Below, piece by piece: positions 398 through 60,459 of a stretch of DNA of 64,000 bases. Every line of letters starts with the position of its first letter. Within the stretch, counting starts at the first letter, position 1. The DNA lies in assembly GCA_038087875.1 (NCBI GenBank), contig CM075985.1, positions 25,358,001-25,422,000 on the forward strand, written 5' to 3'. Below the pieces are notes generated by a model. That model saw nothing but the letters and a program-made list of their open reading frames with translations. It had not been told where the DNA came from and did no database searches. The stretch is from Malacoraja senta (taxonomy: Eukaryota). A program made the translations under genes and the position numbers.

Positions 398-439
398 CTG
401 ATGTAGTGCTGGTGGTGGTCTCAGTTGTTGGTGTCGTTT
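398..439 (-). CDS. MUC19: PTS micro-exon A, unit 1 (ETTPTTETTTSTTS)
   Basis: 42 nt, ttctttctttcactag acceptor, gttagt donor, phase 1-1. Confidence 0.85.
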
Positions 440-916
440 CTAGTGAAAGAAAGAATGCTGTATTCAAGTGGAGCAGCCAAGAGGAATTGGTACACGGTTA
501 TAAAGCCATCAACAGCAATTCATGAGCTGGCACATTTAATGAAAGTGTTTTAATATGTAGATTGGTTACTTCTTAATAATATATGCAAAGATAAACTGCT
601 CAGCAACAACAGACTGTGTCCCCCGCGGCCTCTCCACGGCGTTCAGCGCCCAGCTCGCCTATTTCACCACCTCAACTCGGTGGGTCTCCGGTGATGGCCC
701 CGGTCACTTCCCCGGTCACTTCCCTGTCATTTCACCAGTGAATTGAATAAAGCATGCGGCCATACTATACGGCTGCATTACTTTTTCCTTGTCAATCAGC
801 AGCTGAATATTTCAGGGCCATCATAAACAATTTCAATTTCTTAATGTACCAACTTCAGATTTTGTGGAAGCTCAGCAAGTATTCTAAGAACTACTGATCA
901 GAAATTTAGAACATAA

Positions 917-1052
917 GGAGCGGTAAAGTGCCACAGCTGGTGCAACTCCTACCTCACAGCACCAGAGAATTCAGATTGATTTGTTCCACAGGTGTTGTGT
1001 GCATGGAGATTACATGTACTCCTGTTGTGTGTGCCTTTCCTACAAGTGTCTG
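917..1052 (+). mobile_element. Degenerate tRNA-derived V-SINE/HE1-like 5' head, repeated beside every B, D and E exon (also ~2084-2215, ~2580-2715 and later units)
   Basis: cctcacagcaccagaga...gtgtgcatggagattacatgtactcctg aligns by eye with the SINE at 51973. Confidence 0.7.
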
Positions 1053-1070
1053 AAATATATTGTCACTAAC

Positions 1071-1121
1071 CTGATGTAGTACTGGTTGTGGTCTCAGTTG
1101 TTGATGTAGTTGTTGGTGTTT
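1071..1121 (-). CDS. MUC19: PTS micro-exon B, unit 1 (ETPTTTSTTETTTSTTS)
   Basis: 51 nt (54 nt to 1124 with CAG), gttagt donor, phase 1-1. Confidence 0.85.
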
Positions 1122-1811
1122 CTACTGAAAGAAAATAATGCAATATTCAACCAAGGCAGCCAAGAGGAATTGGTATACACCTAACAATTGGTAGTCAGGA
1201 AAACATCAGCAGGAATTCATATGCTGGCACACTTTATTAAAATGTTTAACAGATGGCATTTTTGTTCTTCGTAGAATAAAATGGCAGGCCAAATTATATC
1301 TGATCAATCAGCAGCTGAATATTTCTGTGCCATCACAAATAAACCTGTTCTCTCTATATACCAGTTGCAGATTTCCTGGAAGATCAACCGTCTTCCAAAT
1401 ACCGCAAGGTCTACTTAATACCATATTTTCTAATACCATTATTCGTTGATCCATTTTTGAAAAATCTTTGAGCTGAAACAAAACTGTTTAACAGCGTTGC
1501 CATGACCAAAAACTCCCGGAATAGTGGAAGAGGCGAAGGGAAGAGACCTTTTCTATAAAAGTGAAAATCCTTATCCATATCTACTGTAAGGTGCCAGACT
1601 CAATTCACTTTTTAAATTATTATTGCAGGCAATCAGCACCAAAAGGCCTCCTTAATTCGGTAGTTGTTTCTATATTTTCTTGGTGAGAAACTACATTTTT
1701 GGAATAAAGCAATGAACAAATATTCCTGAAGAGGGTGCTATATAGAGCTTCACTAAACAAAGCACAGTCCTAAAGGAAAAGCTAACAAGATTGATAGATG
1801 ATGTTACTAAC

Positions 1812-1853
1812 CTGATGTAATGCTGGTGGTGGTCTCTGTTGTTGGTGTCGTTT
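1812..1853 (-). CDS. MUC19: PTS micro-exon C, unit 1 (ETTPTTETTTSITS)
   Basis: 42 nt, tag/gttagt, phase 1-1. Confidence 0.85.
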
Positions 1854-2233
1854 CTAGTGAAAAAAAAGAATGCTGTATTCAAGTGGGGCAGCCAAGAGGA
1901 ATTGGTACGCAGTTATAAAGCCATCAACAGGAATTCATGAGCTGGCATATTTTATGAAAACGTTTTACTAGTTGTCACTTTCTTCATCAGTCAATAAAGC
2001 ATGCGGCCATACTATATGGCTGCATTGATTTTTCCTCGTCTTTCAGAAATTGCAGCTGATCAGGCATTTAGTAAGATTGAGTTGGCACAGATGTGCAGCT
2101 GGTAGAGCTGCAGCCTCATAGTGTTAGAGATTTGTATTCTATCCTGACCTCGGTTGCTGTCTATGCTGGGATTGCACGTTCCCCTTTTCACTGCCTGTGA
2201 TCCCCCAAGTTTTTAACAGAGGATAATACTGAC

Positions 2234-2272
2234 CTGATGTTGTGGTGGTCCCAGATGTTGATGTAGTTGTTT
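2234..2272 (-). CDS. MUC19: PTS micro-exon D, unit 1 (ETTTSTSGTTTTS)
   Basis: 39 nt, tag/gtcagt, phase 1-1. Confidence 0.85.
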
Positions 2273-2733
2273 CTAGTGAAATAAAAAAATGTTATGTTCC
2301 ACTGAGACAAAGAAGAGGAATTGTTATGCAGTTTAGAATCCTTCAACAGGAATTTATCAACTGGCACCTTTTAATAAAACATTTTACACTTGATATTTCC
2401 TTATCAGTGATAAAGCGTGCGGCCATACAATGCGGCTGCATTACTTTTTCCTTGTCAATCAGCAGCTGAATATGTCAGGGCCATCACAAACAATTTCAAT
2501 TTCTTAATGTACCAACTTCCGATTTTGTGGAAGCTCAGCAAGTATTACAAGAACTACTGATCAGAAATTTAGAACATAAGGAGCGGTAAAGTGCCACAGC
2601 TGGTGCAACTCCTACCTTACAGCACCAGAGACTTCAGATTGATTTGTTCCATGGGTGTTGTGTGCATGGAGATTACATGTACTCCTGTTGTGTGTGCCTT
2701 TCCTACAAGTGTCAGAAATATATTGTCACTAAC

Positions 2734-2784
2734 CTGATGTAGTACTGGTAGTGGTCTCAGTTGATGATGTAGTTGTTGGTGTTT
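2734..2784 (-). CDS. MUC19: PTS micro-exon E, unit 1 (ETPTTTSSTETTTSTTS)
   Basis: 51 nt, tag/gttagt, phase 1-1. Confidence 0.85.
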
Positions 2785-3464
2785 CTAGTGAAAGAAAATA
2801 ATGGAATATTCAACCAAGACAGCCAAGAGGAATTGGTATACAGCTAACTATTGGTAGTCAGGAAACCATCAGCAGGAATTCATATGCTGGCACACTTTAT
2901 TAAAATGTTTAACAGATGGCATTTTTGTTCTTCATAGAATAAAATTGTAGGGCAAAACATACTTTTGATCAATCAGCAGCTGAATATTTCTGTGCCATCA
3001 CAAATAATCCTGTGCTATCTATACACCAGTTGCAGATTTCCTGGAAGATCAACCGTCTTCCAAAGACCGCAAGGTCTACTTAATACCATAATTTCTAATA
3101 GTATGGAATGTGTGTACTATGGGTAAGCATGTCTGTTCATATGTCCCATTGATACATGATTCTCAACTTGCATAAAATGTGTTCATATTAATCATGGTTT
3201 TGTTTTTTGCTACGGAATGTCCGAAGAAATAGAGAAGCAGAAAACACCAACACATATCCTCCACAAATCTGAACTATTTTGAAATTGTGTCATAATTTGG
3301 TACAATTGTTATGAGCCAAACATTGACATCTTAACGTGTATATTTGCACAATTTATGCCAATAATGTAAGCAAAGATGCAAGAAGTAAGTCACAGAGCTG
3401 ATGTTAGAAATGTTGTTTCATTGTCTTTGATTTGCCAATGTTTATGGAAAGTGGTTTGACTCAC

Positions 3465-3527
3465 CTGTTGTGGAACTGGAGGTGGACTCAGTTGTACCAG
3501 TTGTCAAAGATGTTGTTGGTGTTGTTC
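3465..3527 (-). CDS. MUC19: PTS micro-exon F, unit 1 (GTTPTTSLTTGTTESTSSSTT)
   Basis: 63 nt, aag/gtgagt, phase 1-1. Confidence 0.85.
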
Positions 3528-4120
3528 CTTGAGAGCAAATAGAAAAGTATTTACAAATTGAATTGCAAGAGTCACCAATCAATTTCAGTACGATACTGCA
3601 CATTTTCCTGAGACTGGGCTGAATTTTAACAATGTTCATTGTTCGTGCCTAAGCAAAGGACATTTAGAAGTTAACCAAATTTTGCTTCGTCATTTATCAA
3701 GGACCGAAATAATGAAAAGACATTGTGATTTTTCAAAGAAAGTTCTGAACTCCTTTATTGATCCATTTTGGAAAAATCATTGAGCAGAAACAAAACTGTT
3801 TAACAGCGTTGCCATGACCAAAAACTCCCGGTATAGTGGAAGAGGCGAAGGGAAGAGACCTTTTCTATAAAAGTGAAAATCCTTATCCATGTCAACTGAA
3901 ACGTGTCAGCCTCAATGCTCTTTTTAAAATTATTTAGGCAACCAGCACCAAAAGGCCACCTTAATATGGTAGAGGCTTCTATATTTTCCTGGTGAGAAAC
4001 TACATTTTTTGAATAAAGGAATGAACAAATATTCCTGAAGAGGGTGCTGTGTAGAAGTTCACTAAACAAAGCACAGTCCTAAAGGAAAAGCTAACAAGAT
4101 TGATAGATGATGTTACTAAC

Positions 4121-4162
4121 CTGATGTAGTGCTGGTGGTGGTCTCAGTTGCTGGTGTCGTTT
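4121..4162 (-). CDS. MUC19: PTS micro-exon A, unit 2 (variant ETTPATETTTSTTS)
   Basis: 42 nt, tag/gttagt. Confidence 0.85.
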
Positions 4163-4793
4163 CTAGTGAAAGAAAGAATGCTGTATTCAAGTGGAGCAGC
4201 CAAGAGGAATTGGTACACAGTTATAAAGCCATCAACAGCAATTCATGAGCTGGCACATTTTATGAAAGTGTTTTAATATGTAGATTGGTTACTTCTTAAT
4301 AATATATGCAAAGATAAACTGCTCAGCACCAACAGACTGTGTCCCCCGCGGCCTCTCCACGGCGTTTAGCGCCCAGCTCGCCTATTTCACCACCTCAACT
4401 CGGTGGGTCTCCGGTGATGGCCCCGGTCACTTCCCCGGTCACTTCCCCGTCATTTCACCAGTGAATTGTATAAAGCATGCGGCCATACTATACGGCTGCA
4501 TTACTTTTTCCTTGTCAATCAGCAGCTGAATATTTCAGGGCCATCATAAACAATTTCAATTTCTTAATGTACCAACTTCAGATTTTGTGGAAGCTCAGCA
4601 AGTATTCTAAGAACTACTGATCAGAAATTTAGAACATAAGGAGCGGTAAAGTGCCACAGCTGGTGCAACTCCTACCTCACAGCACCAGAGAATTCAGATT
4701 GATTTTTTCTACAGGTGTTGTGTGCATGGAGATTACATGTACTCCTGTTGTGTGTGCCTTTCCTACAAGTGTCAGAAATATATTGTCACTAAC

Positions 4794-4847
4794 CTGATGT
4801 AGTACTGGTTGTGGTCTCAGTTGTTGATGTAGTTGTTGGTGTTTCTT
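4794..4847 (-). CDS. MUC19: PTS micro-exon B, unit 2 (CAGAAG tandem acceptor; 54 or 51 nt)
   Basis: gttagt donor; acceptor boundary at 4847 (CAG) or 4844 (AAG). Confidence 0.82.
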
Positions 4848-5534
4848 CTGAAAGAAAATAATGCAATATTCAACCAAGGCAGCTAAGAGGAATTGGTATA
4901 CACCTAACTATTGGTAGTCAGGAAACCATCAGCAGGAATTCATATGCTGGCACACTTTAGTAAAATGTTTAACATATGGCATTTTTGTTCTTCCTAGAAT
5001 AAAATGGCAGGCCAAATTATATCTGATCAATCAGCAGCTGAATATTTCTGTGCCATCACAAATAAACCTGTTCTCTCTATATACCAGTTGCAGATTTCCT
5101 GGAAGATCAACCGTCTTCCAAATACCACAAGGTCTACTTAATACCATATTTTCTAATACCATTATTCGTTGATCCATTTTTGAAGAATCTTTGAGCTGAA
5201 ACAAAACTGTTTAACAGCGTTGACATGACCAAAAACTCCCGGAATAGTGGCAGAGGCGAAGGGAAGAGACCTTTTCTATAAAAGTGAAAATCCATATCCA
5301 TATCTACTGTAAGGTGCCAGACTGAATTTACTTTTTAAATTATTATTGCAGGCAATCAGCACCAAAAGGCCTCCTTAATTCGGTAGTTGTTTCTATATTT
5401 TCTTGGTGAGAAACTACATTTTTGGAATAAAGCAATGAACAAATATTCCTGACGAGGGTGCTATATAGAGCTTCACTAAACAAAGCACAGTCCTAAAGGA
5501 AAAGCTAACAAGATTGATAGATGATGTTACTAAC

Positions 5535-5576
5535 CTGATGTAATGCTGGGGATGGTCTCTGTTGTTGGTGTCGTTT
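5535..5576 (-). CDS. MUC19: PTS micro-exon C, unit 2 (variant ETTPTTETIPSITS)
   Basis: 42 nt, tag/gttagt. Confidence 0.85.
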
Positions 5577-5956
5577 CTAGTGAAAAAAAAGAATGCTGTA
5601 TTCAAGTGGGGCAGCCAAGAGGAATTGGTACGCAGTTATAAAGCCATCAACAGGAATTCATGAACTGGCATATTTTATGAAAACGTTTTACTAGTTGTCA
5701 CTTTCTTCATCAGTCAATAAAGCATGTGGCCATAATATATGGCGGCATTGATTTTTCCTCGTCTTTCAGAAATTGCAGGTGATCAGGCATTTAGTAAGAT
5801 TGAGTTGGCACAGATGTGCAGCTGGTAGAGCTGCAGCCTCATAGTGTTAGAGATTTGTATTCTATCCTGACCTCGGTTGCTGTCTATGCTGGGATTGCAC
5901 GTTCTCCTTTTCACTGCCTGTGATGCCCCAAGTTTTTAACAGAGGATGATACTGAC

Positions 5957-5995
5957 CTGATGTTGTGGTGGTCCCAGATGTTGATGTAGTTGTTT
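5957..5995 (-). CDS. MUC19: PTS micro-exon D, unit 2
   Basis: 39 nt, tag/gtcagt. Confidence 0.85.
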
Positions 5996-6442
5996 CTAGT
6001 GAAATAAAAAAAATGTTATGTTCCACTGAGACAAACAAGAGGAATTGTTATGCAGTTTAGAATCCTTCAACAGGAATTTATCAACTGGCACCTTTTAATA
6101 AAACATTTTACACTTGATATTTCCTTATCAGTGAATAAAGCGTGCGGCCATTACTTTTTCCTTGTCAATCAGCAGCTGAATATGTCAGGGCATCACAAAC
6201 AATTTCAATTTCTTAATGTACCAACTTCAGATTTTTTGGAAGCTCAGCAAGTATTCCAAGAACTACTGATCAGAAATTTAGAATATAAGGAGCGGTAAAG
6301 TGCCACAGCTGGTGCAACTCCTACCTCACAGCACCAGAGACTTCAGATTGATTTGTTCCATGGGTGTTGTGTGCATGGAGATTAAATGTACTCCTGTTAT
6401 GTGTGCCTTTCCTACAAGTGTCAGAAATATATTGTCACTAAC

Positions 6443-6493
6443 CTGATGTAGTACTGGTAGTGGTCTCAGTTGATGATGTAGTTGTTGGTGTTT
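6443..6493 (-). CDS. MUC19: PTS micro-exon E, unit 2
   Basis: 51 nt, tag/gttagt. Confidence 0.85.
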
Positions 6494-7173
6494 CTAGTGA
6501 AAGAAAATAATGCAATATTCAACCAAGACAGCCAAGAGGAATTGGTATACAGCTAACTATTGGTAGTCAGGAAACCATCAGCAGGAATTCATATGCTGGC
6601 ACACTTTATTAAAATGTTTAACAGAAGGCATTTTTGTTCTTCATAGAATAAAATTGTAGGGCAAAACATACTTTTGATCAATCAGCAGCTGAATATTTCT
6701 GTGCCATCACAAATAATCCTGTGCTATCTGTACACCAGTTGCGGATTTCCTGGAAGATCAACCGTCTTCCAAAGACCGCAAGGTCTACTTAATACCATAA
6801 TTTCTAATAGTATGGAATGTGTGTACTATGGGTAAGCATGTCTGTTCATATGTCCCATTGATACATGATTCTCAACTTGCATAAAATGTGTTCATATTAA
6901 TCATGGTTTTGTTTTTTGCTACGGAATGTCCGAAGAAATAGAGAAGCAGAAAACACCAACACATATCCTCCACAAATCTGAACTATTTTGAAATTGTGTC
7001 ATAATTTGGTCCAATTGTTATGGGTCAAACATTGACATCTTAACGTGTATATTTGCACAATTTATGCCAATAATGTGAGCAAAGATGCAAGAAGTAAGTC
7101 ACAGAGCTGATGTTAGAAATGTTGTTTCATTGTCTTTGATTTGCCAATGTTTATGGAAAGTGGTTTGACTCAC

Positions 7174-7236
7174 CTGTTGTGGAACTGGAGGTGGACTCAG
7201 TTGTACCAGTTGTCAAAGATGTTGTTGGTGTTGTTC
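7174..7236 (-). CDS. MUC19: PTS micro-exon F, unit 2
   Basis: 63 nt, aag/gtgagt. Confidence 0.85.
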
Positions 7237-7829
7237 CTTGAGAGCAAATAGAAAAGCATTTACAAATTGAATTGCAAGAGTCACCAATCAATTTCAGTAC
7301 GATACTGCACATTTTCCTGAGACTGGGCTGAATTTTAACAATGTTCATTGTTCGTGCCTAAGCAAAGGACATTTAGAAGTTAACCAAATATTGCTTCGTC
7401 ATTTATCAAGGACCGAAATTATGAAAAGATATTGTGATTTTTCAAAGAAAGTTCTGAACACCTTTATTGAACCATTTTGGAAAAATCATTGAGCAGAAAC
7501 AAAACTGTTTAACAGCGTTGCCATGACCAAAAAATCCCAGAATAGTGGAAGAGGCGAAGGGAAGAGACCTTTTCTATAAAAGTGAAAATCCTTATCCATG
7601 TCAACTGAAAAGTGCCAGCCTCAATGCTCTTTTTAGAATTATTTAGGCAACCAGCACCAAAAGGCCACCTTAATATGGTAGAGGCTTCTATATTTTCGTG
7701 GTGAGAAACTACATTTTTTTAATAAAGCAATGAACAAATATTCCTGAAGAGGGTGCTGTGTAGAACTTCAATAAACAAAGCACAGTCCTAACGGAAAAGC
7801 TAACAAGATTGATAGATGATGTTACTAAC

Positions 7830-7871
7830 CTGATGTAGTGCTGGTGGTGGTCTCAGTTGTTGGTGTCGTTT
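7830..7871 (-). CDS. MUC19: PTS micro-exon A, unit 3
   Basis: 42 nt, tag/gttagt. Confidence 0.85.
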
Positions 7872-8502
7872 CTAGTGAAAGAAAGAATGCTGTATTCAAG
7901 TGGAGCAGCCAAGAGGAATTGGTACACAGTTATAAAGCCATCAACAGCAATTCATGAGCTGGCACATTTTATGAAAGTGTTTTAATATGTAGATTGGTTA
8001 CTTCTTAATAATATATGCAAAGATAAACTGCTCAGCAACAACAGATTGTGTCCCCCGCGGCCTCTCCACGGCGTTCAGCGCCCAGCTCGCCTATTTCACC
8101 ACCTCAACTCGGTGGGTCTCTGGAGATGGCCCCGGTCACTTCCCCGGTCACTTCCCCGTCGTTTCACCAGTGAATTGAATAAAGCATGCGGCCATACTAT
8201 ACGGCTGCATTACTTTTTCCTTGTCAATCAGCAGCTGAATATTTCAGGGCCATCATAAACAATTTCAATTTCTTAATGTACCAACTTCACATTTTGTGGA
8301 AGCTCAGTAAGTATTCTAAGAACTACTGATCAGAAATTTAGAACATAAGGAGCGGTAAAGTGCCACAGCTGGTGCAACTCCAACCTCACAGCACCAGAGA
8401 ATTCAGATTGATTTGTTCCACAGGTGTTGTGTGCATGGAGATTACATGTACTCCTGTTGTGTGTGCCTTTCCTACAAGTGTCTGAAATATATTGTCACTA
8501 AC

Positions 8503-8553
8503 CTGCTGTAGTACTGGTTGTGGTCTCAGTTGTTGATGTAGTTGTTGGTGTTT
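8503..8553 (-). CDS. MUC19: PTS micro-exon B, unit 3 (last Ser changed to Ala)
   Basis: 51/54 nt, cagtag/gttagt. Confidence 0.85.
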
Positions 8554-9243
8554 CTACTGAAAGAAAATAATGCAATATTCAACCAAGGCAGCCAAGAGGA
8601 ATTGGTATACACCTAACTATTGGTAGTCAGGAAACCATCAGCAGGAATTCATATGCTGGCACACTTTATTAAAATGCTTAACAGATGGCATTTTTGTTCT
8701 TCGTAGAATAAAATGGCAGGCCAAATTATATCTGATCAATCAGCAGCTGAATATTTCTGTGCCATCACAAATAAACCTGTTCTCTCTATATACCAGTTGC
8801 AGATTTCCTGGAAGATCAACCGTCTTCCAAATACCGCAAGGTCTACTTAATACCATATTTTCTAATACCATTATTCGTTGATCCTTTTTTGAAAAATCTT
8901 TGAGCTGAAACAAAACTGTTTAACACCGTTGCCATGACCAAAAACTCCCGGAATAGTGGAAGAGGCGAAGGGAAGAGACCTTTTCTATAAAAGTGAAAAT
9001 CCTTATCCATATCTACTGTAAGGTGCCAGACTCAATTCACTTTTTAAATTATTATTGCAGGCAATCAGCACCAAAAGGCCTCCTTAATTCGGTAGTTGTT
9101 TCTATATTTTCTTGGTGAGAAACTACATTTTTGGAATAAAGCAATGAACAAATATTCCTGAAGAGGGTGCTATATAGAGCTTCACTAAACAAAGCACAGT
9201 CCTAAAGGAAAAGCTAACAAGATTGATAGATGATGTTACTAAC

Positions 9244-9285
9244 CTGATGTAATGCTGGTGGTGGTCTCTGTTGTTGGTGTCGTTT
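9244..9285 (-). CDS. MUC19: PTS micro-exon C, unit 3
   Basis: 42 nt, tag/gttagt. Confidence 0.85.
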
Positions 9286-9665
9286 CTAGTGAAAAAAAAG
9301 AATGCTGTATTCAAGTGGGGCAGCCAAGAGGAATTGATACGCAGTTATAAAGCCATCAACAGGAATTCATGAGCTGGCATATTTTATGAAAACGTTTTAC
9401 TAGTTGTCACTTTCTTCATCAGTCAATAAAGCATGCGGCCATACTCTATGGCTGCATTGATTTTTCCTCGTCTTTCAGAAATTGCAGCTGATCAGGCATT
9501 TAGTAAGATTGAGTTGGCACAGATGTGCAGCTGGCACAGCTGCAGCCTCATAGTGTTAGAGATTAGTATTCTATCCTGACCTCGGTTGCTGTCTATGCTG
9601 GGATTGCACGTTCTCCTTTTCACTGCCTGTGATCCCCCAAGTTTTTAACAGAGGATGATACTGAC

Positions 9666-9704
9666 CTGATGTTGTGGTGGTCCCAGATGTTGATGTAGTT
9701 GTTT
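9666..9704 (-). CDS. MUC19: PTS micro-exon D, unit 3
   Basis: 39 nt, tag/gtcagt. Confidence 0.85.
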
Positions 9705-10168
9705 CTAGTGAAATACAAAAAAATGTTATGTTCCACTGAGACAAACAAGAGGAATTGTTATGCAGTTTAGAATCCTTCAACAGGAATTTATCAACTGGCA
9801 CCTTTTAATAAAACATTTTACACTTGATATTTCCTTATCAGTGAATAAAGCGTGCGGCCATACAATGCGGCTGCATTACTTTTTCCTTGTCAATCAGCAG
9901 CTGAATATGTCAGTGCCATCACAAACAATTTCAATTTCTTAATGTACCAACTTCAGATTTTGTGGAAGCTCAGCAAGTATTCCAAGAACTACTGATCAGA
10001 AATTTATAACATAAGGAGCGGTAAAGTGCCACAGCTGGTGCAACTCCTACCTCACAGCACCAGAGACTTCAGATTGATTTGTTCCATGGGTGTTGTGTGC
10101 ATGGAGATTAAATGTACTCCTGTTATGTGTGCCTTTCCTACAAGTGTCAGAAATATATTGTCACTAAC

Positions 10169-10219
10169 CTGATGTAGTACTGGTAGTGGTCTCAGTTGAT
10201 GATGTAGTTGTTGGTGTTT
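10169..10219 (-). CDS. MUC19: PTS micro-exon E, unit 3
   Basis: 51 nt, tag/gttagt. Confidence 0.85.
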
Positions 10220-10899
10220 CTAGTGAAAGAAAATAATGCAATATTCAACCAAGACAGCCAAGAGGAATTGGTATACAGCTAACTATTGGTAGTCAGGAAA
10301 CCATCAGCAGGAATTCATATGCTGGCACACTTTATTAAAATGTTTAACAGATGGCATTTTTGTTCTTCATAGAATAAAATTGTAGGGCAAAACATACTTT
10401 TGATCAATCAGCAGCTGAATATTTCTGTGCCATCACAAATGATCCTGTGCTATCTATACACCAGTTGCGGATTTCCTGGAAGATGATCCGTCTTCCAAAG
10501 ACCGCAAGGTCTACTTAATACCATAATTTCTAATAGTATGGAATGTGTGTACTATGGGTAAGCATGTCTGTTCATATGTCCCATTGATACATGATTCTCA
10601 ACTTGCATAAAATGTGTTCATATTAATCATGGTTTTGTTTTTTGCTACGGAATGTCGGAAGAAATAGAGAAGCAGAAAACACCAACACATATCCTCCACA
10701 AATCTGAACTATTTTGAAATTGTGTCATAATTTGGTACAATTGTTATGTGCCAAACATTGACATCCTAACGTGTATATTTGCACAATTTATGCCAATAAC
10801 ATAAGCAAAGATGCATGAAGTAAGTCACAGAGCTGATGTTGGAAATGTTGCTTCATTGTCTTTGATTTGCCAGTGTTTATGGAAAGTGGTTTGACTCAC

Positions 10900-10962
10900 C
10901 TGTTGTGGAACTGGAGGTGGACTCAGTTGTACCAGTTGTCAAAGATGTTGTTGGTGTTGTTC
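10900..10962 (-). CDS. MUC19: PTS micro-exon F, unit 3
   Basis: 63 nt, aag/gtgagt. Confidence 0.85.
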
Positions 10963-11554
10963 CTTGAGAGCAAATCGAAAAGCATTTACAAATTGAATTG
11001 CAAGAGTCACCAATCAATTTCAGTACGATACTGCACATTTTCCTGAGACTGGGCTGAATTTTAACAATGTTCATTGTTCGTGCCTAAGCAAAGGACATTT
11101 AGAAGTTAACCAAATTTTGCTTCGTCATTTATCAAGGACCGAAATTATGAAAAGACAATGTGATTTTTCAAAGAAAGTTCTGAACTCCTTTATTGATCCA
11201 TTTTGGAAAAATCATTGAGCAGAAACAAAACTGTTTAACAGCGTTGCCATGACCAAAAACTCCTGGAATAGTGGAAGAGGCGAAGGGAAGAGACCTTTTC
11301 TATAAAAATGAAAATCCTTATCCATGTCAACTGAAAAGTGCCAGCCTCAATGCTCTTTTTAAATTATTGTAGGCAACCAGCACCAAAAGATCTCCTTAAT
11401 TTGGTAGTTGCTTTTATATTTTCGTGGTGAGAAACTACATTTTAGAATAAAGCAATGAACACATTTTCCTGAAGAGGGTGCTATATAGAGCTTCACTAAA
11501 CAAAGCACAGTCCTAAAGGAAAAGCTGACAAGATTGATTGATGATGTTACTAAC

Positions 11555-11596
11555 CTGCTGTAGTGCTGGTGGTGGTCTCAGTTGTTGGTGTTGTTT
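11555..11596 (-). CDS. MUC19: PTS micro-exon, A/C intermediate, short unit 4 (ETTPTTETTTSTTA)
   Basis: 42 nt, tag/gttagt. Confidence 0.85.
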
Positions 11597-11976
11597 CTAG
11601 TGAAAGAAAATATTGCTGTATTGAAGTGGGGCAGCCAATAGGAATTGGTACACAGTTATAAAGCCATCAACAGGAATTCATGAGCTGGCATATTTAATGA
11701 AAACGTTTTACTAGTTGTCACTTTCTTCATCAGTCAATAAAGCATGCGGCCATACTATATGGCTGCATTGATTTTTCCTCGTCTTTCAGAAATTGCAGGT
11801 GATCAGGCATTTAGTAAGATTGAATTGGAACAGATGTGCAGCTGGTAGAGCTGCAGCCTCATAGTGTTAGAGATTTGTATTCTATCCTGACCTCGGTTGC
11901 TGTCTATGCTGGGATTGCACATTCTCCTTTTCACTGCCTGTGATCCCCCAAGTTTCTAACAGAGGATGATACTGAC

Positions 11977-12015
11977 CTGATGTTGTGGTGGTCCCAGATG
12001 TTGATGTAGTTGTTT
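11977..12015 (-). CDS. MUC19: PTS micro-exon D, short unit 4
   Basis: 39 nt, tag/gtcagt. Confidence 0.85.
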
Positions 12016-12478
12016 CTAGTGAAATAAGAAAATGTTATGTTCCACTGACACAAACAAGAGGAATTGTTATGCAGTTTAGAATCCTTCAACAGGAATTTAT
12101 CAACTGGCACCTTTTAATAAAACATTTTACACTTGATATTTCCTTATCAGTGAATAAAGCGTGCGGCCATACAATGCGGCTGCATTACTTTTTCCTTGTC
12201 AATCAGCAGCTGAATATGTCAGGGCCATCACAAACAATTTCAATTTCTTAATGTACCAACTTCAGATTTTGTGGAAGCTCAGCAAGTATTCCAAGAACTA
12301 CTGATCAGGAATTTATAACATAAGGAGCGGTAAAGTGCCACAGCTGGTGCAACTCCTACCTCACAGCACCAGAGACTTCAGATTGATTTGTTCCATGGGT
12401 GTTGTGTGCATGGAGATTACATGTACTCCCTGTTATGTGTGCCTTTCGTACAAGTATCAAAAATATATTGTCACTAAC

Positions 12479-12529
12479 CTGATGTAGTACTGGTAGTGGT
12501 CTCAGTTGATGATGTAGTTGTTGGTGTTT
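12479..12529 (-). CDS. MUC19: PTS micro-exon E, short unit 4
   Basis: 51 nt, tag/gttagt. Confidence 0.85.
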
Positions 12530-13209: not shown

Positions 13210-13272
13210 CTGTTGTGGAACTGGAGGTGGACTCAGTTGTACCAGTTGTCAAAGATGTTGTTGGTGTTGTTC
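13210..13272 (-). CDS. MUC19: PTS micro-exon F, short unit 4
   Basis: 63 nt, aag/gtgagt. Confidence 0.85.
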
Positions 13273-13835: not shown

Positions 13836-13877
13836 CTGATGTAGTGCTGGTGGTGGTCTCAGTTGTTGGTGTCGTTT
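13836..13877 (-). CDS. MUC19: PTS micro-exon A, unit 5
   Basis: 42 nt, tag/gttagt. Confidence 0.85.
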
Positions 13878-23348: not shown

Positions 23349-23399
23349 CTGATGTAGTGCTGCTTGTGGTCTCAGTTGCTGATGTTGTTGGTGTTGTTT
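23349..23399 (-). CDS. MUC19: PTS micro-exon, divergent (ETTPTTSATETTSSTTS)
   Basis: 51 nt, aag/gtaagt, phase 1-1. Confidence 0.83.
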
Positions 23400-25224: not shown

Positions 25225-25269
25225 CTGTTGTGGTACTGGTGGTGGACTCAGTGGTTGTAGTTGTTTTTT
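25225..25269 (-). CDS. MUC19: PTS micro-exon, divergent (EKTTTTTESTTSTTT)
   Basis: 45 nt, strong ttctgttttcttgcag acceptor, gtgaat donor, phase 1-1. Confidence 0.85.
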
Positions 25270-27292: not shown

Positions 27293-27339
27293 AATTGTCT
27301 TCAGATTTGCCAATGTTTATTGAAAGTGGTTTGACTCAC

Positions 27340-27402
27340 CTGTTGTGGAACTCGTGGTGGACTCAGTTGCGCCAGTTGTCGAAGATGTTGTTGGTGTTGT
27401 TC
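27340..27402 (-). CDS. MUC19: PTS micro-exon, F type (GTTPTTSSTTGATESTTSSTT)
   Basis: 63 nt, cag/gtgagt, phase 1-1. Confidence 0.87.
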
Positions 27403-27904
27403 CTGGAGAGAGAGTACAAACATGTTATAATTGCAAGAGTCAGCAATCAATTTCAGTACGATTCTGCACATATTCCAGAGACTGGGTTGAATTTTATCAA
27501 GGTTCATTGCTCGTTGCTAAGTAAAGGTCATTTAGAAATTAACCAAAATTTGCTTTATCATTTATCAAATGGACCGAAACTATGAAAACATTGATTTTTC
27601 CAACAAAGTTCAAAATTCCTTCGTTGATCCATTTTGTAAACATCATTGAGCAGAAACAAAACAGTTTAATAACGTTGCCATGACCAAAAACTCCCGGAAT
27701 AGTTTAAGAAGCGAAGGGAAGAGACTTTTTCTATAAAAGTGAAAATCCTTATCCATGTCTACTGAAAGGTGCCAGACTCAATGCTCATTTTAAAATTATT
27801 GCAGGCAATCAGAACCAAAAGGCCTCCTTAATTCTGCAGCTGTTTCTATATTTTTGTGGTGAGAAATGACATTTTTGTAACAAAGCAATGAACAAATGTT
27901 CCTG

Positions 27905-28217
27905 GGGGAGTCCAGAACCTGGGGCCACAGTTTAAGAATAAGGAGTAAGCCATTTTGAACGGAGTCGAGGAAACACTTTTTCTCACAGAGAGTGGTGATT
28001 CTGTGGAATTCTCTGCTTCAGAGGGCGGTGGAGGCAGGTTCTCTGGATGCTTTCAAGAGCTAGATAGGGCTCTTAAAAATAGCGGAGTCAGGGGATATGG
28101 GGAGAAGGCAGGAACGGGGTACTGATTGGGGATGATCTGCCATGATCATATTGAATGGCGGTGCTCGCTCGAAGGGCCAAATGGCCTGCTCCTGCACCTA
28201 TTGTCTATTGTCTATTG
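27905..28217 (+). mobile_element. CR1-type LINE 3' fragment
   Basis: GESRTWGHSLRI...FFSQRVVILWNSL ORF2 tail, (tattgtc)n 3' end; interrupts ttcctg|aagaggg, which is empty in paralogous introns. Confidence 0.9.
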
Positions 28218-28303
28218 AAGAGGGTGGTATATGGAGCTTCACAAAACAAAGTACAGAGGTCCGAAAGGAAAAGCTAACAAGATTGATAGATGATGTTACT
28301 AAC

Positions 28304-28345
28304 CTGATGTAGTGCTGGTGGTGGTCTCAGTTGATGGTGTCGTTT
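28304..28345 (-). CDS. MUC19: PTS micro-exon, A type (ETTPSTETTTSTTS)
   Basis: 42 nt, tag/gttagt, phase 1-1. Confidence 0.85.
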
Positions 28346-28830
28346 CTAGTGAAAGAAAAGAATGGTGTATTCAAGTGGGGCAGCCAAGAGGAATTGGTAC
28401 GCAGTTATAAAGCCATCAACAGGAATTCATGAGCTGGCACATTGTATGAAAACGTTTTACTAGTTGTCATTTTCTTCATCATTGAATAAAGCATGCGGCC
28501 ATACTATACCACTGCATTTCTATCTATACGGCTGCATTACTTTTTCCTTGTCAATCAGCAGCTGAATATTTCAGTGCCATCACAAACAATTTAAATTTCT
28601 TAATGTACCAATTTCAGATTTTGTGGAAGCTCAGCAAGTATTCCAAGAACTACTGATCAGAAATTTAGAACATAAGGAGCGGTAAAGTGCCACAGCTGGT
28701 GCAACTCCTACCTCACAGCACCAGAGAATTCAGATTGATTTGTTCCATGGGTGTTGTGTGCATGGAGATTACATGTACTCCCTGTTATGTGTGACTTTCC
28801 TACAAGAGTCTGAAATATATTGTCACTAAC

Positions 28831-28881
28831 CTGATGTAGTACTGGTAGTGGTCTCAGTTGTTGAAGTAGTTGTTGGTGTTT
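28831..28881 (-). CDS. MUC19: PTS micro-exon, B/E type (ETPTTTSTTETTTSTTS)
   Basis: 51 nt, tag/gttagt, phase 1-1. Confidence 0.85.
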
Positions 28882-29557
28882 CTAGTGAAAGAAAAGAATG
28901 CAATATTCAACCAAGACAGCCAAGAGAAATTGATATACAGCTAACTATTGGTAGTTAGGAAACTATCAGCAGGAATTCATATGCTGGCACACTTTATTAA
29001 AATGTTTAACAGATGTCATTTTTATTCTTCATTGAATAAAATGGCTGGGGAAAATATACTTTTGTTCAATCAGCAGCTGAATATTTCTGTGCCATCACAA
29101 ATATTCCTGTTCTCTCTATACACCAGTTGCGGATTTCCTGGAAGATCAACCGTTTTCCAAAGACGGCAAGGTCTACTTAATACCATATTTTCTAATAGTA
29201 TGGAATGTGTATGGGTAAGCATGTCTGTTCATATGTTCCATTGATACATGATCCTCAACTTGCGTAAAATGTGTTCATTATAATCATGGTTTTGCTTTTT
29301 GCTACGGAATGTCCGAAAAAAATGAGAAGCAGAAAACACCAACTCAGTTCCTCCACAATTCTGAAATTTTTTGAAATTGTGTCAAAATCTGGTATAATTG
29401 TTATGAGCAAAACACTGACATCTTAACATGTATATTTGCACAATTTATGACAATAATGTAAGCAAAGATGCAAGAAGTAAGTCACAGAGCTGATGTTAGA
29501 AATGTTGTCTCATTGTCTTCAGATTTGCCAATGTTTATTGAAAGTGGTTTGACTCAC

Positions 29558-29620
29558 CTGTTGTGGAACTGGTGGTGGACTCAGTTGTGCCAGTGGTTGA
29601 AGTTGTTGTTGGTGTTGTTC
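29558..29620 (-). CDS. MUC19: PTS micro-exon, F type (GTTPTTTSTTGTTESTTSSTT)
   Basis: 63 nt, cag/gtgagt, phase 1-1. Confidence 0.87.
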
Positions 29621-30209
29621 CTGGAAAGCAAATTTACAAATTGAATTGCAAGATTCAGCAATCAAATTCAGTACGACTCAGCACATTTTGCTTAGATTGT
29701 GCTGAATTTTATCAATGTTCATTGCTCATGCCTAAGCAACAGATATTTAGAAATTAACCAAATTTTGCTTCATGATTTATCAAATGGACCGACATTAAGA
29801 AAATACATTGTGATTTATTGATGTAAGGTCTAAACTCCTTCGTTGATCCATTTTGGAAACATCATTGAGCAGAAACAAAACAGTTTAATAACATTGCTAT
29901 GACCAAAAACTCCCGGAATAGTGGAAGAGGCGAAAGGAAGAGACTTTTTCAATAAAAGTGAAAATCCTTATCCATGTCTTCTGAAAGGTGCCAGACTCAA
30001 TGCTCTTTTTCAAATTATTACAGGCAATCAGAACTAAAAGGCCTCCTTAATTCGACAGCTGTTTCTATATTTACGTGGTGAGAAACTACATTTTTGGAAC
30101 AAAACAATGAACAAATGTTGCTGAAAAGGGTGCTATATCGAGCTTCACTAAACAAACCACATAGGTTCGAAAGGAAAATCTAACACGATTGATAGATGAT
30201 GTTACTAAC

Positions 30210-30242
30210 CTGATGTGGTGGTCTCAGTTGTTGGTGTTGTTT
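30210..30242 (-). CDS. MUC19: PTS micro-exon, A type with in-frame 9 nt deletion (ETTPTTETTTS)
   Basis: 33 nt, tag/gttagt, phase 1-1. Confidence 0.82.
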
Positions 30243-30707
30243 CTAGTGAAAGAAAACAATGCTGTATTCAACTGGGACAGCCAAGAGGAATTGGTACACA
30301 GTTATAAAGCCATCAACAGGAATTCATGAGCTGGCACCTTTTATTAAAATGTTTTAATAGTTGTCATTTTATTCGTCATTGAATAAAGCATGCGGCCATT
30401 CTGTACCGCTGTGTTTCCTTTTCCTTGTCAATCAGCAGCTAAATATTTCAATGCCATCACAAATAATTTTACTTTCTTAATGTACCAACTGCAGATTTTG
30501 TGGAAGCTCAGCATGTATTCTAAGAACTACTGATCAGAAATTTTGAATATAAGGAGCGGTAAAGTGCCACAGCAGGTAGAGCTCCTACCTCACAGCACCA
30601 GAGACTTCAGATCGATTTGTATCTTGGGAGTTGTGTGCATGGAGATTACATGTACTCCCTGTTATGTGTGACTTTCCTACAAGTGTCTGAAATATATTGT
30701 CACTAAC

Positions 30708-30758
30708 CTGATGTAGTACTGGTAGTGGTCTCAGTTGTTGATGTAGTTGTTGGTGTTT
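30708..30758 (-). CDS. MUC19: PTS micro-exon, B/E type (ETPTTTSTTETTTSTTS)
   Basis: 51 nt, tag/gttagt, phase 1-1. Confidence 0.85.
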
Positions 30759-31312
30759 CTAGTGAAAGAAAATAATGCAATATTCAACCAAGATAGCCAA
30801 GAGGAATTGGTATACAGCTAACTATTGGTACTCAGGAAACAATCAGCAGGAATTCATATGTTGGCACACTTTATTAAAAAGTTTAACAGGTGGAATTTTT
30901 ATTCATCGTAGAATAAAATGTCAGGGCAAAATATACTTTCGATGAATCAGCAGCTGAATATTTCAGTGCCATCACAAATAATCCTGCTCTCTCTCGACAC
31001 CAGTTGCGGATTTCATGGAAGATCAACCGCCATCCAAAGACCGCAAGGTCTACTTTATACCATAATTTCTAATAGTATGGAATGTGTGTACAATGGGTAA
31101 AATGTCTGTTTGTACTGCAGAGTCCCATTGATACATGATCCTCAATTTGTGTAAAATGTGTTCACTATAATCATGGTTTTGCTTTTTACTACGGAATGTC
31201 CGAAGAAAATAAGAAACAGAAAACACCAACTCTGTTCCTCCACAATTGAATTTAACAGATCTCAGACATTATCAAGGAAAAGCAAACATGATTGATATAT
31301 GTTGTTACTAAC

Positions 31313-31351
31313 CTGATGTAGTGCTGGTGGTGGTCTCAGTTGTTGTTGTTT
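31313..31351 (-). CDS. MUC19: PTS micro-exon, A-like (ETTTTETTTSTTS)
   Basis: 39 nt, tag/gttagt, phase 1-1. Confidence 0.85.
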
Positions 31352-32233
31352 CTAGTGAAAGAAAAGAATGCTATATTCAACCAAGACAGCCAAGAATAAT
31401 TGGTATGCAGTGGGAATACCATCAATAGAAATTCACGATCTGGAACATTTTATTGAAATGTTTGACAGGTGACATTTTCTTATTCGTAGGATTAAGTGGT
31501 AGGGCATACTATATTGTAACATATCTTTCTCTCAATCATCAGCTGAATATTTCATGACCATTACAAATAATGTGACTCTCTTAACACACCAATTGCGGAA
31601 TTCATGGAAGATCAACCTTCTTCCTAAGACTGAATGTTCTACATAATATCATCACTAATAGTATGGGATGCACCTGCAAACAATCAGTTTCATATGTCGA
31701 AACGTGCCATGATAGCCAGTCTGTATTTCTTTCTCTTTGTCAATCAGCAGCTGAATGTTTTTGGGCGTTCACAAACAATCCCGCTCTCTTAACGAATAAT
31801 TGCGGATTTTAGGGAAGTTCAACTATGTCATCCACTGTATTGTCTAGTGTATGCCATTATTTCTCATAGATTGTGATGTATCTGTAAACAATGAGTTTTT
31901 GTGTTCATATGCTCAAACTTTGCCATTATCCTCTTCCTGCGAGAAACTTGCTAATTGTATTCCTGTATTTGCTTGTTCCTGCGGAATATCCGAGGAAAAT
32001 AAGAAGTAGAAGACACCAATTCAGTTCCTCTATATTTATATAGCTTTTTGTAGATTGGGTCAAAACCTGGTATAATTGTTAAGAGCCAAACATTGTCATC
32101 TTAACATGTATATTTGCACAATTTATGGTAATAATGTAAGCAAAGATGCAAGAAGTAAGTCACAGAGCTCATGTTAGAAATGTTGTCTCATTGTCTTCAG
32201 ATTTGCCAGTTTATTGAAAGTGGTTTGGCTCAC

Positions 32234-32296
32234 CTGTTGTGGAACTGGAGGTGGACTCAGTTGTGCCAGTTGTTGTAGATGTTGTTGGTGTTGTTC
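32234..32296 (-). CDS. MUC19: PTS micro-exon, F type (GTTPTTSTTTGTTESTSSSTT)
   Basis: 63 nt, cag/gtgagc, phase 1-1. Confidence 0.85.
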
Positions 32297-32994: not shown

Positions 32995-33045
32995 CTGATG
33001 TAGTGACGGTGGTGGTCTCAGTTGTTGGTGTTGGTGGTGTTGTTT
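32995..33045 (-). CDS. MUC19: PTS micro-exon (ETTPPTPTTETTTVTTS)
   Basis: 51 nt, tag/gttagt, phase 1-1. Confidence 0.85.
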
Positions 33046-33754
33046 CTAGAGAAAGAAAATAATGTTATATTTAATCAATGAGGCCAAGATGAAGTGGTTC
33101 ATGGTTGTGAAATATTCAACAGGAATTCATAAACGGGCGAATTTTAATAAAACGTTTTACGAGGTGACATTTTCATCATAGTTTAGTAAAGTTGGAAGGC
33201 ATACTATACAGCTGTATGTCTTTCTCTTTGTCAATCAGCTGGTGAATGTTTCATTGTGTTCACAAACAAACCCATTCTCTTAATATACCAATTGTGGATT
33301 TCATGGAAGCTCAACCATGTCTTCCATGATTGTATTGTTCTGTATTGTCCAGTGTATGCCATTATTTCTCATAGTGTGTAATGCATCAGTAAACAATGAG
33401 TATTTGTGTCCAAACGTGTTATGATCGTCAACCTGTGCAAAATGTGTTCATTGTACTCCTGCATGCGCTTGTTCCTGCGGAATGTCTGAGGAAAATGAGA
33501 AGTAGAAGATACTAACTCAGTTCCTCATTATATTTTTATGCCCATCTGTATTGATATTTATCAAATGGGTCGAAGTGTGATGTGAAAGGTGCAGGAAAGG
33601 TACTGCTGCTGAAAATTCTTATCCATGTTGCCATTGTTTATATTGAAACAAAATCAATTATTTTATTTTGCTGCTCTGAATTTAAATTGCTGCAGTATCT
33701 AGTGCTCCAATAATTATTGGAGAAATTATGCAAAATTATTCAAAATGTTACACT

Positions 33755-34548
33755 GTGAGGCACCATCAGCGATGGCAGCCTCGTCAACAGTCTGTCTGTC
33801 TATTTGTCTTTTTTGTTATTTTTATTGTTTTAAAATTAGGTGTTAATGTTCTCTGGTTTGTTTAATGTGGGAAGTGGGGAAGGGAGTTGGGGAAAACTTT
33901 TTTCAATCCCTTACCTTGCCGGAGATGCAATGTTTTTCCTGATCGTATCTCCGGTCGCTTTGCGGCCTAACATCATGGAGCTGGTGACCTAACATCATGG
34001 AGCTGGCGGCCTTGCTCGAGTCTGACTTTGAGCCTCACTGCAGGGCCATGCACTTGCCATCGGAGCTTGCGATCCCTTGCCTGGGATCGATGCTCCAACC
34101 ACAGCCTGCAGATTTCAACATCGATGAGCTCGCAGTCTCGGGTAGAGACTGATGTCGGGTAGCTCCAAAGTTGCAAGAGTTTCGACCAGCCCCAACCCAA
34201 GGTCAGATCGCCCGGCGCGAGGGAGCTGGGATTCCCCGATGCAGGAGCTTGATCTCCCCGACGCTGAGGGCTCAACCGTCAGCTGCAGGAGCCAAGATTG
34301 CCTCGACAATGGAAGGTTCAATGCCCCTGACCATGGGAGGACAAAGAAGGGAAGAAGATTGAACTTTTTCTGCCTTCCATCACAGTGAGGAATGTGAGGG
34401 AGTCGCTGTGGTGGATATTAATGCTCAAAATTTATTTGGGTGTCTTGTTGCTTTTTGTTGGTACGACTATAGCAAATCAAATTTGTCGTATGTTGCAAAA
34501 CATACTTGGCTAATAAAGTACTATTTTGATTTTGATTATGATTATCAT
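33755..34548 (+). mobile_element. ~790 bp GC-rich non-autonomous retroelement-like insertion, family not identified
   Basis: AATAAA and (tgattt/tgatta)n tail; empty site visible in the paralogous intron near 26793. Confidence 0.7.
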
Positions 34549-35057
34549 ACATGCCTCCAGAAAAAAAAGTCTTGATCACTCATATTTGCAATCCTATGAA
34601 TAAAAATATGTAAGCATGAATCTAAGATCCTCAAAACACTCGGAATGATGCACCAGTTGCATCATTTTGTTGCACCCTATTAATCTATATATTTTATATT
34701 TTATGCTGATGGAAGTTACCATCAAATACATATAATTTGGTTATCAGGAGACTGAGAAGGTCAAAGCACTCAGAGCATTTCCCTTCCAGTCAAGAAATAG
34801 CAAGAGCGTCTTATTTGTCATATGGACCAGATAGGAACTGGTACAGTGAAATTCTTGCTTGCTGCAGCTATGCAGGCACCATAGATGTATCAACAGCAAA
34901 ATAAAATGTACAATAAATTACAAGTTATTCAAAGTAAACTACACCATGATAGTGCAATAATCAAATTATATAGAGCATTTGCAGTATAAACATTCACAAT
35001 ATGGTGAAAATATAAGGAAACTTGAGCGTCTTGAAATGTTTACAACCTTAGCAAAGT

Positions 35058-35297
35058 GTTCACCCAGACAGTTGTGAACCTGTGGAATTCTCCGCAACAG
35101 ATGGCAGTGGAGGCCAATTCACTGGATGTTTGCAAAAGAGAGTTAGATATAGCTCTTAACGCTAATGGAACAAGGGATATGGGGAGAAAGCAGATACGAG
35201 GGCTAGGTTTAGCAGCCATGATCATATTGAATGGTGGTGCTGGCTCGAAGAAGCGAATGGCCTCCTCTTGTACCTATTTTTTAGGTTTCTATATTTA
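35058..35297 (+). mobile_element. CR1-type LINE 3' fragment
   Basis: FTQTVVNLWNS.PQ.AVEA.SL motif and the same 3' UTR type as 27905-28217. Confidence 0.85.
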
Positions 35298-35344
35298 AAG
35301 TTAGAGATGCTTTTCTTAGTAATTCAACAGCTGAATATTTCAAA

Positions 35345-35640
35345 GCTTGTTTTCTCTGGAATGTCTGAGGTTGAGGAGAGATCTGATAAAAGTATATAAA
35401 ATTATAAGAGGCATAGATAGACAGTCCGAATCATTTCCTAGGATGGAAAAGTCAAATGCTAGAGCGCATACAAATATTATCTTAAGTTTAAAGGTGATGT
35501 GCAAGGCAAGTACACAGGGAGGTTAGTGCTTGGAATCTTCTGTTGGGGGTGATGGTGGAGGCAAGTACATGGATATACAGGGAATGGCGAGTTATGGATT
35601 ATGTGCAGGCAGATGAGTTGGTCTTGGCATCTTAAATGTC
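35345..35640 (+). mobile_element. Old CR1-type LINE 3' fragment
   Basis: gaggagagatctgataaaagtatataaaattataagaggcatagatag (RGDLIEVYKI-like). Confidence 0.7.
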
Positions 35641-35861
35641 TGGCACTGTCGAAGGTGACTTGGGTACGAGATATTCATGGGAATATCATAAACCTAACTT
35701 AAGTATAAATCATTAATTCATAATTATTGATAGTTACTGCAACTTTGGACATTGAGATTTAAGCCACTTTAATCTTGTAAAATTGAAATATTCAGCCAAG
35801 ATTGTGGCATTAATTTTCAAATTTGATTCTTTATTAAAATAGAAAACTAAGATGTCTTTAC

Positions 35862-35936
35862 CTGTACTGGTGGTTGAAGAAATCGTAGTTGTCGATGGTG
35901 TGGTGACTGTTGTTGTCGCAGTTGTGGTTGTTATTC
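35862..35936 (-). CDS. MUC19: First, unique PTS exon (ITTTTATTTVTTPSTTTISSTTST)
   Basis: 75 nt, cag/gtaaag, phase 1-1. Confidence 0.9.

Positions 35937-60405: not shown

Positions 60406-60459
<54 letters not shown>

Follow-up and report, generated by a model that had tools for sequence, protein, structure and literature searches.

A MUC19-clade mucin gene in Malacoraja senta with a threonine-rich rod built from spliced, symmetric micro-exons

We analyzed a 64,000-nucleotide stretch of the Malacoraja senta genome (GenBank assembly GCA_038087875.1, contig CM075985.1, positions 25,358,001 to 25,422,000), hereafter the window, within which all coordinates below are counted from the first letter. 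The window holds the 5′ two thirds of a large minus-strand gene for a gel-forming mucin, with ray and shark models named mucin-19-like or mucin-2-like as its nearest relatives, and contains no neighboring gene. Cysteine-rich exons at 39-63 kb lie upstream of, and on the same strand as, an array of very short exons encoding the proline-, threonine- and serine-rich (PTS) domain of the protein. Taking all of the evidence together, we consider it likely that this gene is a MUC19-clade mucin whose rod is encoded by spliced, symmetric micro-exons, was lengthened by block duplication, and includes its exons in a mostly constitutive manner.

The PTS exon array and its higher-order repeat

We scanned both strands of the window for segments bounded by AG and GT that had a length divisible by three, were open in phase 1 and contained Thr, Ser or Pro at 60% or more of their residues. 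The minus strand yielded 47 loci between positions 398 and 35936, and none beyond 36 kb within the window. With one CAG|GT donor picked per locus, the exons total 2313 nt and 771 aa, and comprise sixteen exons of 51 nt, twelve of 42 nt, nine of 63 nt, seven of 39 nt, and one each of 75, 45 and 33 nt. All 47 exons are phase 1-1, start with AA or GA and end with CAG followed by GT; all are multiples of three, and hence any subset of them remains in frame. The exon number, total length, individual lengths and splice design given in the original prediction, which was made from the sequence alone, are thereby reproduced exactly. On the plus strand, the scan returned just 11 weak, unrelated matches, none of them with the motif, and the plus strand was rejected as the coding strand.

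In the predicted product of the array, Thr makes up 59% of residues, Ser 19%, Glu 10% and Pro 5%. The donors are near consensus (CAG|GTTAGT, GTGAGT, GTAAGT), and the acceptors, either YAG or AAG, are preceded by pyrimidine-rich tracts; six 63-nt exons belonging to the young repeat units described below have an AAG acceptor. Six of the 51-nt exons (at 1071, 4794, 8503, 14509, 18208 and 21604) possess tandem acceptors, of the type cagAAG at 4794 and cagTAG in the other five. Use of the upstream CAG yields a 54-nt exon with a Val-Glu junction (Glu-Glu at 4794), and because of this the junctions are not strictly Glu or Gly. The earlier claim that they are always one of these two residues fails at the tandem acceptors. 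The first junction into the array encodes Arg (C|GA).

The exons are organized in a higher-order repeat (Table 1). Tandem Repeats Finder reported nothing, its period limit of 500 nt being shorter than the unit of about 3.7 kb, and the repeat was instead found by self-BLAST. Self-comparison reveals a 3.72-kb unit with six exons, in the mRNA order 63-51-39-42-51-42. These six-exon units are arranged head to tail from position 398 to about 21.1 kb, in about five full copies that are 97.7-98.4% identical; a shorter unit of four exons (11555-13835) and an incomplete copy reaching 22.2 kb are also present. Overall, about 35 of the 47 PTS exons lie inside copies of the 3.7-kb repeat. The array also passes the left edge of the window, as positions 176-397 align to unit positions 3502-3723 with 96.8% identity. 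Both the growth of the array by genomic copy number and its continuation to the left of the window, as originally proposed, are thus supported.

At 27.3-32.4 kb lie older copies, which share 85-88% identity with the young unit and include a three-exon unit with the order 63-51-42 (29558, 28831, 28304). The six-exon unit arose by internal duplication: its pair of 51-nt exon regions agree at 94.8%, and its pair of 42-nt regions at 92%. Among the young units, divergence is 0.82% in exons versus 1.97% in introns, with 6 of 291 exon columns variable, and between old and young units it is 8.8% in exons and 12.4% in introns. The lower divergence of exons can be read as modest evidence of constraint. 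Each six-exon unit holds one copy of a roughly 130-nt GC-rich element (601-740, recurring at 4370, 8079, 14085, 17796 and 21180), located in the intron beside the 42-nt A-type exon; this element is the source of plus-strand "PSSPISPPQL" pseudo-hits.

Table 1. Features of the window, listed in the direction of transcription.
Feature	Position	Strand	Basis
End of VWD1 exon, with CGLCG motif; gene continues 5′ beyond the right edge	62975..63058	-	tblastn of Hypanus P0028 residues 156-183
C8-1 and TIL-1 exons	58803..59323	-	Pfam C8, TIL; tblastn
Exons of the D2 assembly (VWD2, C8-2, TIL-2), split by introns	49671..58164	-	Pfam VWD/TIL; colinear tblastn to P0028 residues 320-718
D'D3 exons (TIL', E', VWD3, C8-3, TIL-3, E3); last exon 39122-39263 ends in phase 2	39122..49578	-	Pfam, PDB match, tblastn
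32-nt linker exon, C-M-C-E-D-G-I-T-T-C-K; phase 2 in, phase 1 out	37154..37185	-	sequence; "CxCxxGITTC" of Hypanus and Narcine
First PTS exon, 75 nt	35862..35936	-	exon scan
PTS exon, 51 nt	32995..33045	-	exon scan; RNA depth, joint 32286>32994
Older diverged units: exons 32234-32296 (63), 31313-31351 (39), 30708-30758 (51), 30210-30242 (33)	within 27340..32296	-	exon scan, self-BLAST, X1 RNA
Older diverged units: exons 29558-29620 (63), 28831-28881 (51), 28304-28345 (42), 27340-27402 (63)	within 27340..32296	-	exon scan, self-BLAST, X1 RNA
PTS exon, 45 nt	25225..25269	-	exon scan
PTS exon, 51 nt, AAG acceptor	23349..23399	-	exon scan
E-type exon, 51 or 54 nt, cagTAG tandem acceptor, in partial unit	21604..21657	-	exon scan, self-BLAST
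Young unit: exons 20605-20667 (63), 19874-19924 (51), 19371-19409 (39), 18949-18990 (42), 18208-18258/61 (51/54), 17547-17588 (42)	17547..21144	-	exon scan, self-BLAST
Young unit: exons 16891-16953 (63), 16160-16210 (51), 15672-15710 (39), 15250-15291 (42), 14509-14559/62 (51/54), 13836-13877 (42)	13836..17546	-	exon scan, self-BLAST, four RNA runs
Short four-exon unit: exons 13210-13272 (63), 12479-12529 (51), 11977-12015 (39), 11555-11596 (42)	11555..13835	-	exon scan, self-BLAST
Young unit: exons 10900-10962 (63), 10169-10219 (51), 9666-9704 (39), 9244-9285 (42), 8503-8553/56 (51/54), 7830-7871 (42)	7830..11554	-	exon scan, self-BLAST
Young unit: exons 7174-7236 (63), 6443-6493 (51), 5957-5995 (39), 5535-5576 (42), 4794-4844/47 (51/54, cagAAG), 4121-4162 (42)	4121..7829	-	exon scan, self-BLAST
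Young unit: exons 3465-3527 (63), 2734-2784 (51), 2234-2272 (39), 1812-1853 (42), 1071-1121/24 (51/54), 398-439 (42)	398..4120	-	exon scan, self-BLAST
Start of next unit; array leaves the window	1..397	-	self-BLAST

Transcription and splicing of the array

RNA from public runs was mapped on two stretches of the array, 27250-33150 and 13150-17650, with X1, X12, X14 and X15 used as de Bruijn contig sets and X8 as raw reads. On the first stretch, X1 depth is confined to nine bins holding predicted exons and two bins holding interspersed repeats, and is zero in all other intron bins. The X1 joints with CT..AC ends, equivalent to GT..AG on the minus strand, fall at predicted exon borders (for example, 30757>31312/3 and 32286>32994). 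On the second stretch, which represents a young unit, X12, X14, X15 and X1 all show depth in exon bins alone and zero depth in every intron bin. Joints here include 16953|17547 and 13272|13836 (42>63), 15710|16160 (51>39) and 14562|16891 (the 54-nt form). The 54-nt form is found in RNA contigs of three runs, and the 51-nt form in one (X1, 14559|16891). At exons, the depth of run X8 did not exceed about 2, and no joints were listed for it. RNA joints at the predicted exon borders, the test on which the exon model had been staked, are thus found on both mapped stretches and the model stands: the exons of the PTS array are transcribed, and are spliced together into one open frame.

Cover is uneven among exon types. 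The 42-nt D-type exon ("TTPTTETTTSITS"; 15250-15291, with copies at 1812, 5535, 9244 and 18949) shows no cover in the four RNA contig sets while its neighbors are covered, and the 51-nt B-type exon has RNA cover in X1 alone of the four runs. Separately, an intronic interspersed repeat at 27841-28234, also present at 30402-30598, reaches a word depth of up to about 10^7 in DNA contigs and a high depth in RNA as well; it is probably an abundant fragment of a short or long interspersed nuclear element of this lineage.

In an array of symmetric micro-exons, variable skipping of cassettes could generate many rod lengths from one gene, possibly in a tissue-wise manner. We consider such combinatorial splicing unlikely. 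It would be permitted by the phase 1-1 design of all 47 exons, any subset of which is in frame; many of the exons are also shorter than 51 nt, the AAG acceptor of the young 63-nt exons is weak, and the D-type exon is without cover in four runs. Splicing-based control of length has moreover already been proposed for chicken Muc13, whose multi-exon PTS domain holds one repeat unit per exon (PMC1552070). Set against these points, the donors are near consensus, and there is no read-level sign in the runs used of two isoforms from one individual.

Some joints in X12, X14 and X15 are out of order with respect to the mapped stretch, namely 63>54>42 and 63>39. These were first taken as skipping, a reading that was dropped as the same neighbor pairs exist in older units, where 63>51/54>42 (29558>28831>28304) and 63>39 (32234>31313) are normal neighbors. 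The 63>54>42 contig measures 136 nt and is identical in X12, X14 and X15. The contigs carry 2-6 mismatches, are identical in three differently labeled runs, and probably derive from other species, with a unit make-up of their own. Similarly, a 63>51 joint of X1 on the old stretch corresponds to a normal neighbor pair in young units. In two further out-of-order joints of X1 (27402>29558 and 27403>28833), either the sides are short (21-30 nt) or the joint lies 1-2 nt off the exon borders, and chimeras can arise when contigs are built with k=31 over near-identical cassettes. The frame compatibility of the exons allows skipping without demonstrating it, and the tuning of rod length by exon skipping, as suggested in the original prediction, is not supported so far. 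We think that most cassettes are constitutively included.

Domain order and family of the gene

The exons upstream of the array match Pfam VWD, C8 and TIL, and in tblastn are colinear with residues 156-1182 of a RefSeq gene model from the stingray Hypanus sabinus (P0028; XP_059842765.1), spanning part of D1, D2 and D'D3. The best PDB match of the VWD3/C8-3 exon is to residues 964-1050 of MUC2 D3. The gene thus shows the three N-terminal VWD-C8-TIL assemblies of a gel-forming mucin, with the start of D1 beyond the window, and a PTS domain that directly follows D3. D3 is joined to the array in frame via a 32-nt linker exon: exon 39122-39263 ends in phase 2, and linker 37154-37185 ends in phase 1 and feeds exon 35862-35936. 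The same order, with "CxCxxGITTC" followed by a Thr-rich stretch, is seen in the Hypanus and Narcine relatives. A tblastn search for CysD domains in 1-36 kb of the window found none. The C-terminal (3′) part of the gene lies to the left of the window; the relatives from Pristis (P0029) and Mobula (P0040) have VWC and cystine-knot domains.

When the VWD3/C8-3 exon served as query in an exhaustive HMMER search, the top identities of 57-59% are to chondrichthyan mucin-19-like proteins (Rhincodon, Heptranchias, Narcine, Callorhinchus), followed by mammalian mucin-19 at 40-53%. In a midpoint-rooted D'D3 tree of 146 rows, built with a quick IQ-TREE method, the window falls in a 17-row chondrichthyan clade with a Shimodaira-Hasegawa-like approximate likelihood ratio test (SH-aLRT) value of 97, nearest to Narcine and Hypanus. 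A larger clade of 31 rows, with an SH-aLRT value of 100, unites 16 chondrichthyan rows and the window with all 10 mucin-19 rows of mammals, plus 4 unnamed rows, and leaves amphibian MUC5-like rows outside; within it, the chondrichthyan clade is sister to mammalian MUC19. Over D'D3, the window is 72% identical to its nearest relative by this region, the Narcine bancroftii model XP_069763811.1 (an automatic prediction, as is the Hypanus model), and 54-56% identical to mammalian MUC19 versus no more than 48% to the next group. Judged by these sequence comparisons, the gene is a MUC19-clade gel-forming mucin.

Mammalian MUC19 lacks CysD and a fourth VWD assembly (Lang et al, 2016; PMC4948705). Because the nearest full-length relatives of the window gene carry both, and in this resemble some spiggins, "MUC19-clade" is a safer term than "MUC19 orthologue". 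A MUC2/MUC5-type gene is hinted at by the automatic names of some relatives ("mucin-2-like", "mucin-5AC-like"), and by the CysD domains and fourth VWD that Hypanus P0028, Pristis P0029 and Mobula P0040 share with MUC2 and MUC5. We find this assignment very unlikely: the D'D3 tree joins the chondrichthyan set with mammalian MUC19 and sets amphibian MUC5-like proteins apart, the D'D3 identities to mammalian MUC19 and to the next group agree with the tree, and Callorhinchus has been described as having three Muc19 paralogues, and spiggins related to Muc19 as having a fourth VWD (Lang et al, 2016; PMC4948705).

Assignment to the MUC19 clade is accompanied by a shared exon design. We mapped the model protein of a MUC19-like locus of the kangaroo rat Dipodomys ordii back onto its DNA, and found that its post-D3 PTS exons are all phase 1-1 and end in CAG|GT, as in the window. 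They are moreover organized as repeats of a three-exon block of about 5 kb, and the window likewise has a repeated multi-exon block. The Dipodomys exons start with G followed by G, C or A, giving Gly or Ala junctions, whereas those of the window start with AA or GA; they also span a wider range of sizes, at 36-429 nt versus 33-75 nt. Between 47877 and 63101 of the Dipodomys locus, the mapped exon stretches measure 72, 99 and 219-429 nt, and parts of the model between the repeats (residues 1650-1763) look out of frame. In a paralogue from the bamboo shark Chiloscyllium punctatum, the PTS micro-exons directly after D3 are phase 1-1 and 42-60 nt long, again as in the window. A proximal PTS domain divided into many symmetric phase 1-1 exons is thus seen in the window, in Dipodomys and in Chiloscyllium punctatum, and because the latter two loci show it too, the cassette design appears common to the MUC19 clade. 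The MUC19 locus of the desman Galemys lends weak support, with two candidate phase-1 PTS exons in about 4 kb after D3, followed by an assembly gap.

The PTS micro-exon design is therefore already known, from mammalian MUC19, and is inherited here rather than new. A precedent in MUC19 had been cited from the start, and it is borne out more closely than by analogy, as the window gene itself belongs to the MUC19 clade and the rodent MUC19 model has the same phase 1-1, CAG|GT design. Human MUC19 has about 170 annotated exons, which are mostly small. It also has a VNTR (variable number tandem repeat) exon of about 12 kb (PMC10557577); no VNTR exon of this kind was seen in the window. Mammalian MUC19 exons are rich in Gly, Ala, Ser and Thr, and the window product, in contrast, is about 60% Thr.

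Closer to the window, the Hypanus model (2506 aa over 110 kb) has the same Thr-rich cassettes of 16-20 residues right after D3, joined by E, VE or GE. It is rich in "...STTV|ETTTP..." junctions, consistent with the 54-nt exon form. In the Narcine model (P0022), residues ~740-930 after D3 form a 19-residue repeat, "QKLLERAQLAPPTQQPVPR", that looks like a Thr-rich cassette array read in the wrong frame. Among the loci compared, the six-exon 3.7-kb higher-order unit is seen in the window alone. Our literature search found no paper on the exon structure of cartilaginous-fish mucins.

Outside this family, chicken MUC2 has its repeats spread over exons 32-45 (PMC3549977). Chicken Muc13 and MUC2 resemble the window gene in dividing the PTS domain among many exons, and differ in that their exons are far fewer and larger (69-aa repeats in MUC2); they also belong to other families, Muc13 being a transmembrane SEA mucin and MUC2 a member of the MUC2 family. 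In the Xenopus integumentary mucins, Thr-rich repeats are separately spliced exons. These proteins, FIM-A.1, FIM-B.1 and FIM-C.1, are skin mucins with polydispersity and genetic polymorphism, and class 1-1 exons encode their TFF modules (PMC7350206).

Growth of the array by block duplication

The length of a mucin rod sets the properties of the mucus gel, and in the best-studied human mucins this length varies through VNTRs within one huge exon. The present locus is a clean, RNA-supported case of an alternative, in which a rod of many symmetric micro-exons is lengthened by duplication of exon-plus-intron blocks. To the idea that the array is a non-coding macrosatellite, with units that are not exons and Thr-rich frames that are open between AG and GT by chance, we give next to no credence and reject it on the RNA evidence: the joint copying of exons and introns at 98% identity means that an open frame in young copies alone proves little, but RNA contigs from five runs hold exons without introns joined at predicted borders, the frame continues from D3, stingray gene models encode the same cassettes, exons diverge less than introns, and the other strand has no comparable candidates.

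We read the origin of the rod as follows. After the D1-D2-D'D3 domains for disulfide polymerization, the heavily O-glycosylated, Thr/Ser-rich rod is encoded by a string of 33-75 nt exons, each with a strong CAG|GTRAGT donor, instead of one giant exon, and the array has grown by tandem duplication of blocks containing both exons and introns. The six-exon 3.7-kb block 63-51-39-42-51-42 arose from an older three-exon block, 63-51-42, and was then recently amplified to about five full copies with about 98% identity. Unequal crossing-over inside introns could add or remove any block while keeping the frame. Such gain or loss is frame-safe because every exon is symmetric, and rod length could therefore change at the genomic level without harm. 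The symmetric design would then be mainly a consequence and an enabler of block duplication, inherited from a MUC19-family ancestor, rather than a regulated combinatorial device. A more far-reaching version, in which the phase 1-1 cassette with its CAG|GT end and purine start has been ancestral to the MUC19 family for more than 400 million years, from rays to rodents, and is truly skipped in combinatorial fashion in cartilaginous fish to give polydisperse rods from one gene, seems to us distinctly unlikely.

Several points weigh against our overall reading of the locus as a MUC19-clade gene with a spliced rod that grew by block duplication. The RNA runs are probably from related species rather than from the sequenced individual, and because of this the RNA shows which types of exons and junctions are used, not which genomic copies. 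Exons 35862-35936, 25225-25269 and 23349-23399, as well as the 32-nt linker, lie outside the two RNA-mapped stretches. The missing RNA cover of the D-type exon, and the cover of the B-type exon in one run alone, may reflect either skipping of these exons or their absence from the sampled species. Finally, the copy number of a 3.7-kb repeat with 98% identity could be affected by mis-assembly.

The presence of the same phase and splice motif in a rodent MUC19 model suggests an old design that characterizes the family, and nothing established is overturned by the window locus. Arrays of this type are easily overlooked or misframed, as seems to have happened in the Narcine model, and the exon design described here can aid their annotation. 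The locus also provides a tractable system in which to ask whether micro-exon arrays serve splicing-based tuning of length.

Two minor features lie in introns between the cysteine-rich exons. In the D3 region, open reading frames at 44965-45480 (minus strand) and 47677-47895 (plus strand) resemble the tails of retrotransposon reverse transcriptases, and an intron of the D1 region contains a (TA)n-type microsatellite at 60364-60504.

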